Origin: Octopus bimaculoides
Lineage: Eukaryota
Direction of reading: 5' to 3'
DNA: 58,569 bases
NCBI RefSeq assembly: GCF_001194135.2
Contig: NC_069002.1
Span: 6,069,769 to 6,128,337, forward strand
Of this stretch, positions 45,371-55,049 are shown piece after piece. The notes beneath the pieces were generated by a model. That model saw nothing but the letters and a program-made list of their open reading frames with translations. It was not told the DNA's origin and did not search any database. Position numbers and translations under genes: made by a program. Position 1 is the first letter of the stretch; every line of letters starts with the position of its first letter.

Positions 45371-45385
45371 CTTCCCAGTTCCTGG
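45371..45385 (-). CDS. unc-13: unc-13 15-nt microexon A2, (x)RNWE(G), phase 1-1
   Basis: Pyrimidine tract of about 45 nt, ...ttttcttttcatcctcag|CCAGGAACTGGGAAG|gtatttat. No stop. Confidence 0.75.
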
Positions 45386-46240
45386 CTGAGGATGAAAAGA
45401 AAAAGAAAAGGAAAAAAGAAAAAAGAGAAAAAAATCACAGTCAAAATAGTAATTGAAGGAGACGTTTTGAAATTTAAATAGGAAATAATTGTTATTGGTG
45501 AGAATGTGAAAAAAAGAAAAAAAGACAGAGATTGTGGGTGGGTGGGTGGATTAAGCCAATTATTCTAAATCAAAGGCAATGTAGGAAAAAGAAAAAAAAG
45601 ATAAAAGACACAGAGGAAGGACAAAGCTAAGAAAACAGGAAAAAAAAAAATACAATAAAAAAAATGGGGAAAAACAATTGACTTTTTCTTCATAAATTGC
45701 AGAGATATATTAAAGTTATAAATTTAGTAACAATATTTCATACACCAACAAATAGTAAGAAAAGTAATCGATATATATTTTTTTTTATTATTTGTGGCAG
45801 TTCTTTTTTCTGTTTTTTTTTCTTTTTTTGTTGTTGTTTTTTTTCGGTTTTAATGTCTTCTGCAGATAAAGAAAGAATCGGGATAAAAAGTAAAAATGAA
45901 TAAATAAAAGCAAAATTTTCCTGCAATTCAACAATTCTGATTCTCGTAGTAAAATGGCTCTAGGTTTTATCAACGAACAAAATCTTAAGCAAACATCATA
46001 CAAGTGCCCTCTACCCCCTCCACCGACAATGATGACAACAACAACAACAACAATTATAACAACAGCAATAGCCATAACAATCTTGTCTTTTATTGCTACA
46101 AGGAAGGTGGCTGGGAGTGGGAGGAGGAACATTAGGAAGAGAGATAGGAAAAAGTGGGCGGGAGGTGAGGTGAGGGGTTTACACAGAAATAAGGATGAAA
46201 GAAAGAAAAAAATGAAATCGAACTTGAGAGAGGAGGGGGG

Positions 46241-46615
46241 ATGAGCAGGGGGGTGAAAGAGGGGGAAGGAGAGAAGGAGACAGGAGAGACAGGAGAAAGG
46301 GTAGAGATGGAAAGGGGGGAGATGGCAAGAGGGGAGAGGGAAGAAGTGAGAGAGGTGAAGGGGAGAGAGGAAGAGTGGGAGAGAGGAAAGGAGAAGGGAT
46401 GGGGAGAGAGGGAGAGAAAGGGAGAAGAAGGAAAGAAGGGAGTAAAGAGAGAGACAGAGGTGAGAGAGGGCGTGGAGAGGAGAGAGAGGGGGCGTGGATA
46501 GGAGAGGGAGAGAGGAGAGGAGAGAGAGGAGAGGAGAGGAGAGGGAGGAGAGAGAGAGAGACAGAAGGAGAGAGAAAAAGGGAATGTAAAAAGGTGGAGT
46601 GTCAGAAAGATTGAT
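46241..46615. repeat. Long G/A-rich tract on plus (C/U-rich on the unc-13 transcript)
   Basis: About 375 bp almost purely purine; similar GA-rich tracts at about 1310-1430 and 1660-2110. Confidence 0.9.
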
Positions 46616-48749
46616 TCATCTAGAGGGGTAAACAGAGAGATACAGAGAGATACACAAATACACAGATAGATGTATATGTAAGTATATAATATGTGTGTGT
46701 GTGTAGAGAGAGAGAGGGAGTAGGTAGATTACCAGAGAGACAGATTCATCTAGATAGACAGATAGATCAACAGATAGAAAGAGATCAAATAGGGTGACAG
46801 ATAAGCTGATTAACAGATAAACCGAAGCAGAGGGATACACAAATACATAGAGGTATATGTATGTATATGTGTGTATGTGTGTGTGTGTGTGTGTATTGTT
46901 TGTGCTGGTAACATGTAACCCAGAACAACCTGTTGCATGGTTGGGCCATCAGTTTGCTAGATAAGGAGGGTGGTTTTCATTAGACATCTTCAAGTATGTG
47001 TAATGCAACCTATCAAACGGCAGATGTCATTACGAGAATCAATCGTCCTCCAACAGCTGGGAGTGAGACACTTAGTCTTTGTTTAGACATCTCTGTTGGA
47101 GAAGGAAAACTCTGGTCTAACACCTGTGACTTTGTTTGCATCCAGTGACATAGAATAGTTTTACTTTGTTGGGTTTACATTAACGAGTTGGAATAATCCC
47201 TGCGCAAGGCCTTTCCTAACTTTAAAAAAGCTTCAGGCACAAAAAAATCATTTGATTTTTATTATTTCCATTTTATGCTAGCATACAATGGACAACCACA
47301 GACAAAAAAAAATGCATAAAAAAGCAGTAAAACATTCCCTGACAGAATGAAGATGTGTGTTAATGTAGGTGTCAAGTTCTCTGAACACCAGCTGCAAGAG
47401 GTGCCCATCACTTCCACATCTGTACAAACAAGTGTAGGTCTGTAGCAGGATTGAAAAGCCAACCCTTACTGCTCTTTTTCAAGAGAACAGTCAAGCACTG
47501 GCGTTACTCAAAATTGAGTTGCAGCCATCATATGCATGTATGAGAGGGTGTGAGAATGAGCAAAGTAAAGGTAATGCTGACACTCCTTGTTAGTAGTCAG
47601 GAAGGAAGGCAGAACCCATAACTCATTACAGGGCCTCGGGGGTTAGTGGGAGGGATAGCGGAAAGTATCCTCAATCTAGAAGCCTGGCCTGAACAATTGC
47701 AACAGAGTGGGGTCTGGTAGTGGTACCCCAGCTGCCTGATTGGTGGTGTTAAATCTGATGAGGCATTAAGTCAACCACTAAAGTGGTCCGTGGTAGGATT
47801 TGAACTCAGAATGTAAAGAACTGGAACAAATACATTCAAGGCATTCAATCTGACTTTCTTACAGTTCTGCTAATCCATAGTTCTAGATTGGAACTTTTTT
47901 ATTGAGCTCAAAGGAATAAAATGTGAAGATAACCTTGGTAGGATTTGAACTCAGAATGCAAAGATCCAGGACAAATACTGCAAGGCTGTAGATCTGATGT
48001 TCTTATAGACCTGGCCGATCGACTGCTTTGGAGTTTTAGATTTTTCTGTTTTTATTATCACTGACCAACTCTATCCTTTTGGAAAACCTACCAGTGAAAT
48101 ATAAAAAACCCTTTATGTGAAAAACAGATGAGGGTTTGCAACAGGGAGAGCATCACACTGTAAAACCATAGCTCTGAATCAGAGAAATCAATTCCTATTC
48201 AAGCCAAGCTAACATGGAAAAATGGGTGTTAAATGAAAAAAAACGAAGGAACAAATGAAGTTAGAAATTATTCAGGATTTATGATGGACTTTACGTTATA
48301 AAGCAAACCACATATTGTATTGTATTGTACTGGATATACATTTGTTTATCGATAAGGAATTAATGTGAACTTTGCTGCTTTTGTTTACTTTTTCTTTGCT
48401 TGTGCTTATTGCCTGATAGAACAATCATAAATATATCAGTGAGCGAGGGTAGGTTTTCTATATGGTCGTTCAATACGCTAGAGATAGCAGCTAAACAATA
48501 CTTATACATTCACTTTCTTTTAAAAACAAAACAAAAAAGTGGTGGGGAGTAATATCAGTAAAATGTGATCCTAGATAACCCCAAAATGGGATCGAATGTT
48601 AATGATTGGATGGGATTTTGATCATAGGACTGTTTTGATCAGGGAAGACCCGGGGTTAAACAACAACTACAAAAGCCATAAATATTACGCAAAATTGGAC
48701 AACCGATGAAGCAATAAATTTAATTCAACAATATATCGCATATATATAT

Positions 48750-49610
48750 ATAGGAAAATGAAGAATAAGGCAGAATGCTAAATTGAAAGCATGTTTTAAT
48801 AAAGATTTCTAATGTGCTTTCATTGTGAAGCAAATTTTCAAGAAGGAGAATGAAAATGTTTTTTACAAAGAAGTACAAAATGAAGAAAATAATATATATA
48901 AAAAAATAACTATACCAATACATTATATTGTCTTTGAGCTTTTGAAGTTCAATGGTAATCCATGTAGATAATGGTTGGAAAAATAAGGATGCATAAGAAT
49001 TGAGAGTTGTGTTAGGTTTAAAAAAAGGAGCTAAAGGTTTATGTGTTAAGCAGGAAGCGTGGTGTCAAAACAGGGAGTGTCTGTAAGGAGAGACAAATCT
49101 AAAAAGATTTGTCTCCCCTTACACACACTTCCTGTTTTGACACCACACTTCNNNNNNNNNNNNNNNNNNNNNNNNNNNNNNNNNNNNNNNNNNNNNNNNN
49201 NNNNNNNNNNNNNNNNNNNNNNNNNNNNNNNNNNNNNNNNNNNNNNNNNNNNNNNNNNNNNNNNNNNNNNNNNNNNNNNNNNNNNNAGCTCCTTTTTTAA
49301 ACCTAACACAACTCTCAATTCTTATGCATCCTTATTTTTCCAACCATTATATACATGAATTACCATTGAACTTCAAAAGCTCAAAGACAATATAATGTAT
49401 TGGTATAGTTATTTTTTTTATATATTATTTTCTTCATTTTGTACTTCTTTGTAAAAAACATTTTCATTCTCCTTCTTGAAAATTTGCTTCGCAATGAAAG
49501 CCCGTTAGAAATCTTTATTAAAACATGCTTTCAATTTAGCATTCTGCCTTATTCTTCATTTTCCTATTATTTCTCCACGTGCGGTTAACACAACCCCACT
49601 ATTTACTGAC
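48750..49610. mobile_element. Fold-back element, copy 2
   Basis: Same arms, AAAA loop at 49101-49104, extension on the right; N gap 49152-49286 in the right arm; flanked by (TA)n. Confidence 0.9.
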
Positions 49611-49717
49611 ATATATATATGTATATAAATACATACATATATATATATGTATATATACACATACATATATATATGTATGTATCTATATATATATAGATAC
49701 ATACACATATATATGTA

Positions 49718-54554: not shown

Positions 54555-54564
54555 TCCATGGCAT
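54555..54564 (-). CDS. unc-13: Candidate alternative first exon, coding end ATG CCA TGG A (MPW), phase 1; 5' UTR extends to about 54700 or further
   Basis: GCC-ATG-CCA-TGG-A|gtgagt strong donor, in-frame TGA upstream, CpG-enriched segment. Splicing to A2, B and the 80-nt exon reads MPWTRNWEGYEDLPEVE. Confidence 0.4.
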
Positions 54565-54637
54565 GGCACTCGACCGGTTACAACGACAAGTGTTCCAGTT
54601 GATGCGATCAACGGAACAACCTGCTCATGAAATTAAC

Positions 54638-54697
54638 TTGCAAGTGACCGAGCGCTGCCGTATAAACATGCAAATGGCCAAGCAGTGTCGTATAAAC
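54638..54697. repeat. 30-bp tandem direct repeat (23/30 identical)
   Basis: TTGCAAGTGACCGAGCGCTGCCGTATAAAC / ATGCAAATGGCCAAGCAGTGTCGTATAAAC. Confidence 0.9.
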
Positions 54698-55034
54698 TAC
54701 AAGGCAACATGTTTAATTAAAATATGTTACTGGTAACATTAATGGAAATGATCTTATTGATTTCTCTGTTTCTCAATTGTTCTAGTTACATAAGTAAACT
54801 GACTACTTTGTACATCTAAAAAGCAAATTTCAATTCTTGTTCTACAAACAATTTAAAAGCTGATACTATCAAAGTCTACCATTTTTTTTTTCTTTTCTTT
54901 TTTTTTTTAATATCAACCAGACGTTTCAACAAGTTAGCCCAAGCTATCCATTGATTGGTACCAAGTCCCATACCAATGTGCAAGTACATCATAAAATACA
55001 ACAAGATATTTATAAAGAACAAAAAAATAAATAC

Positions 55035-55049
55035 CTTCCCAATTTCTGG
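55035..55049 (-). CDS. unc-13: unc-13 15-nt microexon A1, (x)RNWE(G/A), phase 1-1
   Basis: Minus strand: tttgttttctttttccctag|CCAGAAATTGGGAAG|gtatttat. No stop; near-identical to the microexon at 45371-45385. Confidence 0.7.

Follow-up and report, generated by a model that had tools for sequence, protein, structure and literature searches.

Two microexons for one peptide

Why should a gene keep two separate exons of 15 nucleotides (nt) that encode exactly the same peptide? The question is raised by the unc-13 gene of Octopus bimaculoides, a C2A-containing form of the Munc13-1/ubMunc13-2 type, which is read from the minus strand of a stretch of 58,569 nt of contig NC_069002.1 (positions 6,069,769 to 6,128,337; hereafter the window). 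In a first-pass annotation of this DNA two GT-AG microexons, here called A1 and A2, were described as an exon duplication in which both copies had been kept and differed only at silent sites. The analysis reported here makes it highly probable that A1 and A2 are tandem-duplicated twins which are spliced together within an array of five microexons that lengthens a linker next to the C2A domain; that the inclusion of this array varies is more likely than not.

Both microexons were located on the minus strand at the places where they had been annotated (Table 1), with A1 lying in the context ...ttttccctag/CCAGAAATTGGGAAG/gtatttat and A2 in the context ...catcctcag/CCAGGAACTGGGAAG/gtatttat. They are identical at 13 of 15 exon positions and at 23 of 25 when the splice signals are counted, and the 25-nt arrangement of ag, 15 nt and gtatttat occurs exactly twice in the window as against 0.00 expected from 100 shuffles. 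The reading frame is fixed by the next recognizable exon of the gene, which encodes the helix that follows C2A in Munc13 (the helix exon): its acceptor, ...ttctag/AT CTT CCT, is in phase 1, and the microexons are therefore read as G/CC AGR AAY TGG GAA G/AT, that is A-R-N-W-E-(D). In the (A)RNWE frame both differences (AGA/AGG and AAT/AAC) are silent, as had been proposed. When all pairs of substitutions were enumerated, two chance changes left the peptide intact with a probability of 0.021, which rises to 0.057 when the count is restricted to transitions. Both copies are probably under purifying selection. With their significant similarity and common phase (1-1) the two adjacent exons have the marks of a tandem exon duplication. 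The size and structure of the twins and of a third, 9-nt exon described below are those of microexons (15, 15 and 9 nt, within the range of 3-27 nt, multiples of three, AG before and GT after, all in phase 1-1).

The A1 acceptor has 62% pyrimidines over its last 40 nt and an AG-free zone of 33 nt; that of A2 has 97% pyrimidines over the same length, an AG-free zone of 97 nt and a branch-point-like TTTTGAC whose A lies 56 nt upstream. Their common donor, AAG/GUAUUU, is a weak 5' splice site since position +4 is not A and position +5 is not G. The TGC/UGC motif typical of SRRM4/eMIC-dependent exons was absent from the 60 nt upstream of the 3' splice site of either twin. A U- or AU-rich stretch follows both donors (GUAUUUAUAAUUUAUUUAUAUU at 45363-45340 and GUAUUUAUUUUUUUGUUCUUUAU at 55027-55010, minus strand) and looks like a binding sequence of the ELAV/TIA type. 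Inclusion of an unc-13 microexon in C. elegans is driven from the downstream intron by EXC-7, the worm's ELAV homologue (PMC12287369).

A five-member array

The key to the use of the twins was found in a sister species. The exact-sequence cluster of the UniParc fragment that matches a downstream exon of the window consists of two proteins, A0A0L8FPA9 and XP_036368007.1. The latter is a RefSeq product of Octopus sinensis named 'protein unc-13 homolog B-like', with 388 amino acids and a gene range of 228.6 kb, and it reads ...GHSILIDARFELPY GYEDWE ADWE ARNWE ARNWE GYE DLPEVEAAELQSKLDVLNSIMDQELNQ YDSIQDQQRRQTYSQ FSPLMAGHS... The stretch that contains the array (...ILIDARFELPYGYEDWEADWEARNWEARNWEGYEDLPEVEAAELQ...) can be parsed in phase 1 as ARFELPY/GYEDWE/ADWE/ARNWE/ARNWE/GYE/DLPEVE, which corresponds to five microexons of 18, 12, 15, 15 and 9 nt. 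A1 and A2 are the third and fourth of these. The fifth, m5, had not been listed by the first-pass annotation and was found in the window between A2 and the helix exon, where its acceptor is strong and its donor reads gtaagt. The twins are paralogous, as had been proposed, but they do not stand alone as a pair.

When A1, A2, m5 and the helix exon of the window are spliced together behind a leading phase-1 G, the translation is ARNWEARNWEGYEDLPEVEAAELQSKLDVLNSIMDQELNQ, which is identical at 40 of 40 positions to residues 93-132 of XP_036368007.1. A1 and A2 have the form of canonical, in-frame microexons and very probably are coding, and of the three uses which had been suggested for them (one or the other, zero to two copies, or a division between promoters) the inclusion of both, giving ARNWE-ARNWE in frame, is the one that is seen in the sister-species model. 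Whichever of A1, A2 and m5 were combined in a test, the frame was kept and, because all five exons are in phase 1-1, any subset of the whole array must keep it as well. The exons for GYEDWE and ADWE were sought by their common DWE, which is absent from all minus-strand frames of the window, so that both must sit upstream of position 58569, as must the C2A exon.

The array adds up to 23 acidic and aromatic residues to the ancestral sequence, and the preceding ARFELPY is kept in O. sinensis. A model in which ARNWE replaces ARFELPY (a constitutive microexon following a shortened C2A exon) was rejected, as the O. sinensis protein has ARFELPY and then the microexons. In four of the five exons the peptide finishes with (D/N)-W-E. 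The sequence (G/A)AY-TGG-GAR-G is common to four units, and GYE is similar to the opening half of GYEDWE. These common ends suggest that inside the intron between C2A and helix a single microexon encoding WE was duplicated again and again, which would have produced the present series of 18, 12, 15, 15 and 9 nt. Exons as small as 9-18 nt were presumably placed by Gnomon because transcripts support them.

Two other searches with the array gave nothing further. A word-indexed protein search with the spliced peptide returned no match. Scanning metagenome contigs for AGCCAGRAAYTGGGAAGGTA gave six matches (G+C 0.38-0.62) with protein-coding-like flanks and no splice-site features; these look like chance occurrences in microbial DNA, and their number is about that estimated for chance.

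Position of the insert in Munc13

The helix exon, which encodes DLPEVEAAELQSKLDVLNSIMDQELNQ and ends AAT CAG/gtatttct, matched the Munc13-1 sequence with a tblastn E value of 0.02; an exon for the unc-13/Munc13 helix that follows C2A is present at 35509-35588. A C2A exon was not found in the window with vertebrate and mollusc queries, which means that the intron between C2A and helix is longer than 23 kb in the octopus; in the O. sinensis orthologue the C2A strands stand directly before the microexons. A homologous fragment from Priapulus aligns to rat Munc13-1 in chain A of PDB entry 2CJS (E 1e-32) and also to 2CJT (which ends ...LLDAHFE). If residues are counted on from where the 3-128 construct ends, the ELPY/DLPE junction falls at L131/D132 of the rat protein. 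Octopus ...ARFELPY resembles rat ...AHFELPL(131) and octopus DLPEVEAAELQ resembles rat D(132)IPEEEARYWAKKLEQ; rat Munc13-1 and all non-octopus sequences examined have no residue at the junction whereas the O. sinensis model has up to 23, and the O. bimaculoides window holds three of the five exons that encode this insert. These alignments put the insert after the equivalent of L131 and before that of D132, in the linker that joins the C2A sandwich to the RIM-binding helix. The first-pass annotation had placed it directly after C2A, which holds, and the position can now be stated more exactly.

This linker is well described in the rat protein. The structures (Lu et al. 2006, PMC1472246) are those of the Munc13-1 C2A domain with its C-terminal extension in complex with the RIM2alpha zinc finger (2CJS) and of the C2A homodimer (2CJT). 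Residues 129-150 of Munc13-1 are needed for tight binding to RIM and form a helix that a linker joins to C2A. In the productive complex this linker is extended and the zinc finger is held from both sides, by the C2A sandwich on one face and by the helix on the other; of the linker side chains, L131 alone makes a good packing contact with it (PMC1472246). Munc13 C2A can exist as a homodimer, which is inactive, or switch to a heterodimer with RIM, and it is the heterodimer that primes synaptic vesicles (PMC1472246). Splicing A1 and A2 into the same mRNA, to give ARNWE-ARNWE, together with the other units would be expected to alter the reach or the stiffness of the linker between C2A and helix, and a linker altered in this way could shift the balance between the C2A homodimer and the RIM heterodimer, which sets vesicle priming. 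With up to 23 extra residues placed exactly in the linker that must reach round the RIM zinc finger, the octopus offers a clean natural experiment on the relation between linker length and priming.

Flanks and assembly gaps

The surroundings of the two exons were compared. A blastn search of 2.5 kb on either side of A1 against the same region of A2 gave a single collinear match (55027-55065 with 45363-45403, 41 nt, 85%), the remaining matches being microsatellite. Global alignment of flanks of 50-200 nt gave scores that were not clearly above those of shuffled sequences (z 0.5-2.4), and the highest of these values stems from the pyrimidine tract common to both. Moreover the 300 nt on each side of A1 and A2 had no other match within the window except (TAA)n. 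Long near-identical flanks would be the mark of a duplicate that stems from the assembly or from a second haplotype, and only the 41 nt align. Since the flanks are not alignable, the pair is neither such a duplicate nor a segmental copy nor part of a common repeat, and the statement in the first-pass annotation that the surrounding introns could not be aligned is borne out. The island of similarity extends from the acceptor AG to 8 nt into the following intron, which is the footprint expected of a selected exon with its core splice signals.

Three assembly gaps were found between the twins, all within the A1-A2 intron and more than 3.2 kb from either exon, and no exon or splice site is touched by them. 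As they are intronic, they raise no question of reading frame. A2 and the helix exon lie on one gap-free contig (32536-49151) and A1 on the neighbouring one. The gap at 49152-49286 is flanked by an inverted repeat of 97-98% identity, with arms at 48750-49032 and 49287-49567 that match, in the right order, an intact foldback copy at 27884-28724; about 29 nt of the element would fall in the gap. This arm order supports continuity across the gap. The other two gaps, 49759-49768 (10 N) and 51703-51802 (100 N), are inside (TA)n runs which extend on both sides. In addition, the exon order of the window, A1-A2-GYE-helix, agrees with that of XP_036368007.1.

The array in other animals

Five outgroup loci, all invertebrate, contained both flanking exons: one from Elysia chlorotica (L004) and four on contigs of ENA assemblies (L006, L013, L014 and L015). 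In all five a 126-nt C2A exon ends ...DA[RH]FELP[YG]+G and is followed by an intron of 0.99-5.7 kb and then by the helix exon. None of these introns contained a 15-mer with four or fewer mismatches to the twins in a splice context, or an RNWE-like, W-containing cassette in phase 1. An exhaustive HMMER search with the open reading frame (ORF) around 35509-35588 showed that many invertebrates have the helix exon, DLPE[SA]EAAELQNKLEVLNNIMDQEV, in genomic ORFs where its 5' boundary is the same, and spliced annotated proteins were added by a profile search. The C2A strands and the helix are joined directly in Capitella (...FLDARFELPY-DLPESEAASLQ), in Priapulus (...LLDSRFELPY-DLQEGEAKELQ...GMSEDSDYTSDVNYP) and in a beetle and a psyllid (...DCRFELPF-DPEN...). 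The downstream SEDSDY exon led to three orthologous loci in which no helix exon was found within 10 kb upstream. The array is thus absent from every non-cephalopod sequence examined, a statement about the genomic and protein sequences compared here.

One of the outgroup contigs, L014, has a duplication of its own. Its C2A exon ends ...TTTGAACTTCCAGGAG/GTAGGTAG, and between 7657 and 8311 a 55-nt unit, which starts 12 nt inside the C2A exon and includes the donor, is repeated in tandem 12 times (90% matches). The same exon-intron junction has thus been duplicated independently there.

How the exons are used

That the twins are an artefact is very unlikely. One copy would then have to be a duplicate that stems from the assembly or from a second haplotype, or both would be pseudo-exons, left by a repeat or by a short templated insertion and strung together by a gene predictor. 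A1 and A2 do lie on different contigs with three gaps between them, and gene models can be wrong; the gaps, however, all fall within repeats, one in the foldback element and two in (TA)n runs, the flanks cannot be aligned and have no other copy in the window, and the similarity ends precisely at the AG and the 8-nt donor with both differences silent. The independent O. sinensis assembly also gives two ARNWE units in the same order of exons. An RNA gene is not hinted at either: a pair of microRNA-like or other non-coding RNA genes was considered and rejected, as no stable hairpin was found round the twins (fold z +0.2 to +0.85, both strands) and Rfam gave no match in 35000-58569. Hardly more credible is strict mutual exclusion, in which a transcript would carry A1 or A2 and never both. 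Copies of the same length, phase and peptide which are adjacent in one intron are the usual signature of this mode (PMC9741552), and it was among the uses that had been suggested; it is contradicted by ARNWEARNWE in XP_036368007.1, where both are in one product. Moreover, swapping identical peptides would leave the protein unchanged, and exclusion is not enforced by the frame, which joint inclusion keeps. The least probable of the alternatives is a partition by promoter, in which A2 would be joined to an internal first exon that ends at 54555 (ATGCCATGGA/gtgagt), A1 being used by transcripts that start at the C2A promoter. An ATG with a good phase-1 donor is present at 54555-54564, and alternative promoters within introns are used by Aplysia unc13 (PMC9282427). 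The evidence in the window is this ATG and GTGAGT, which in our judgement could easily be chance; Pfam searches with the ORFs overlapping A1 and the 54555 region gave nothing meaningful, so that the local ORF is without a Pfam match. As the O. sinensis product runs from C2A through ARNWE-ARNWE, A2 is used in C2A-containing transcripts and a separate first exon is not needed.

A more serious possibility, though we consider it the less probable one, is that the exons are real and constitutive, all five being always included in the C2A-bearing transcript as a 23-residue insertion with no dosage or regulation. It agrees with the preferred reading, that of a variably included array, on the identity of the exons and differs solely on their use. 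The only public model found has all five exons together, the acceptor of m5 is strong and its donor is gtaagt, the pyrimidine tract of A2 is of exceptional strength, and no UGC enhancer-type motif lies within 60 nt upstream of either twin. Against it, lineage-restricted exons and microexons of synaptic genes are usually alternative. The donor of the twins, AAG/GUAUUU, is weak, the five exons are symmetric (phase 1-1), and full skipping restores the ELPY/DLPE junction that is universal elsewhere; unc-13 microexons, moreover, are regulated in worm and mouse (PMC12287369, PMC4387716). From the weak twin donor, the free combination of exons in frame and the return of the universal junction when all are skipped, we infer that inclusion of the array exons is probably variable. 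Several points weigh on the other side. Inclusion is known only from an automated Gnomon model in the sister species, and in O. sinensis the conservation of the array was seen at the peptide level only. The C2A exon of the octopus and array members 1 and 2 are outside the window, and a UGC motif is lacking near the 3' splice site of A1 and of A2. The single RefSeq isoform holds all five exons, which could mean constitutive inclusion and, with it, no graded adjustment. Finally, AlphaFold2 gave the array region (residues 67-107) a predicted local distance difference test score (pLDDT) below 50 and so has no reliable say on whether it is helical or flexible; the prediction, made for XP_036368007.1 without an alignment, had a mean pLDDT of 45.7, and a helix over WEADWEARNWEARNWE at pLDDT below 50 was given no weight.

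A bolder version of variable inclusion can be imagined, in which the five microexons act as a combinatorial dial of length and charge with up to 32 combinations and 0-23 residues. Neurons would then choose the number of WE units and in this way set the balance of homodimer and RIM heterodimer, the release probability and short-term plasticity. We regard this as unlikely. If it were true, the twin ARNWE exons would have been kept because copy number matters, and serial duplication of a microexon would have given rise, in this array, to a novelty in synaptic tuning that was not seen in the non-cephalopod animals examined.

Other unc-13 exons and repeats in the window

The features read from the window are collected in Table 1. 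The YDSIQDQQRRQTYSQ exon, which in O. sinensis sits between the helix exon (ending in phase 0) and the exon at 25423-25536 (starting in phase 1), was not found in the window. In the corresponding interval (25537-35508) it may hide in one of the gaps 25994-26247 or 31959-32535, or it may differ in O. bimaculoides.

A further exon duplication in unc-13 is seen at residues 278-338 of XP_036368007.1, where SPVDSHVSSLNVSRQSTQDY-SCSNEEGDYN is followed by a diverged second pair, SCSNDEADDYN-SPVNSRISSADVSRQSTQDY. The window holds the first pair only (8905-8964 and 4127-4156), and the second must lie past coordinate 1 or in the gap 3370-3850. The O. bimaculoides proteins recovered for unc-13, A0A0L8FPA9 (112 amino acids) and UPI00071D5F60 (147 amino acids), are short fragments which cover downstream exons only, and the 388-residue O. 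sinensis model is itself partial and begins inside C2A. The array part of unc-13 seems to be poorly annotated in O. bimaculoides.

Two repeats were also noted. The foldback element, about 0.8 kb in length with long inverted arms, has two copies (48750-49567 and 27884-28724) which are 86-88% alike. In the intron between A2 and m5, a 39-nt unit is present three times (100%, 100% and 98%) at 44207-44329 on the plus strand, inside an ORF reading ...CRICGSKNETILHILSECS... which looks like a retrotransposon fragment.

Table 1. Positions in the window of the array microexons, their splice signals, further unc-13 exons and the repeat that spans an assembly gap.
Feature	Position	Strand	Remarks
Microexon A1, 15 nt, CCAGAAATTGGGAAG	55035-55049	minus	encodes (A)RNWE; phase 1-1; array member 3
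A1 donor, gtatttat	55027-55034	minus	same 8 nt as the A2 donor
A1 acceptor region, ...aaaatttgttttctttttccctag	55050-55084	minus	AG-free zone of 33 nt
Microexon A2, 15 nt, CCAGGAACTGGGAAG	45371-45385	minus	encodes (A)RNWE; phase 1-1; array member 4
A2 donor, gtatttat	45363-45370	minus	followed by AU-rich aatttatttatatt
A2 acceptor region	45386-45442	minus	very long pyrimidine tract
Microexon m5, 9 nt, GTTATGAAG	41931-41939	minus	encodes (G)YE; phase 1-1; array member 5; context ...ttctaatgattttatttttttcttttattttttacag/GTTATGAAG/gtaagt
Helix exon, 80 nt, (D)LPEVEAAELQSKLDVLNSIMDQELNQ	35509-35588	minus	enters in phase 1, leaves in phase 0; homologous to the RIM-binding helix of Munc13-1 (132-150 and beyond)
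Downstream exon, (F)SPLMAGHSLNSS...GRPLP(T)	25423-25536	minus	phase 1-1
Downstream exon, (T)GMSEDSDYTSDVNFP...QSFIND(S)	11530-11809	minus	100% identical to O. bimaculoides A0A0L8FPA9
Downstream exon, 60 nt, (S)PVDSHVSSLNVSRQSTQDY(S)	8905-8964	minus	
Downstream mini-exon, 30 nt, (S)CSNEEGDYN(S)	4127-4156	minus	
Foldback repeat element in the A1-A2 intron	48750-49567		gap 49152-49286 at its centre

Comparison with known systems

A literature search on microexons and octopus, on unc-13 and cephalopods and on tandem exon duplication and microexons found no description of the octopus unc-13 array. The first-pass annotation had been aware of none, which stands as far as papers are concerned and has to be qualified for databases: the exons are already contained in an automated RefSeq model, and appear to have been carried there without being described.

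Microexons as such are not new to this gene family. A 9-nt 'VLK' exon between the calmodulin (CaM) site and C1 is known from C. elegans and Drosophila and exons of 6 nt from mouse Unc13b and Unc13c, and in worm and mouse the inclusion of these exons alters synaptic or neurite phenotypes (PMC12287369; PMC4387716). The octopus exons share with them the tiny, frame-preserving format and the place in the regulatory N-terminal half of the protein. They differ in that the known exons are single and belong to the CaM-C1 linker, whereas the octopus has five in the linker between C2A and helix, with repeated units that include a pair of identical peptide. Unlike the known unc-13 microexons, moreover, the octopus array is not common to the other animals examined.

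The twins also resemble tandem duplicated exons in general, having arisen by local duplication within an intron and lying side by side with the same length and phase. Where Kondrashov & Koonin 2001 and Letunic 2002 are taken up in PMC9741552, such exons are usually treated as mutually exclusive substitutes with diverged peptides. The octopus copies, in contrast, are additive in XP_036368007.1 and encode the same peptide. Units of 15 nt are probably too short for the usual duplicated-exon screens based on protein similarity, and this mode is likely to be overlooked by them. The array would be a case of microexons that multiply in tandem and are used additively, and a splicing-based addition to the ways in which coleoid cephalopods diversify their synaptic proteins.

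Functional parallels are the y and z sites of agrin and the meA and meB sites of PTPdelta and PTPsigma, where several microexons are present at one site and graded insert lengths tune a synaptic protein-protein interface. Those mini-exons are not duplicates of each other, they are conserved across vertebrates and their graded use is proven, whereas in the octopus graded use is only deduced.

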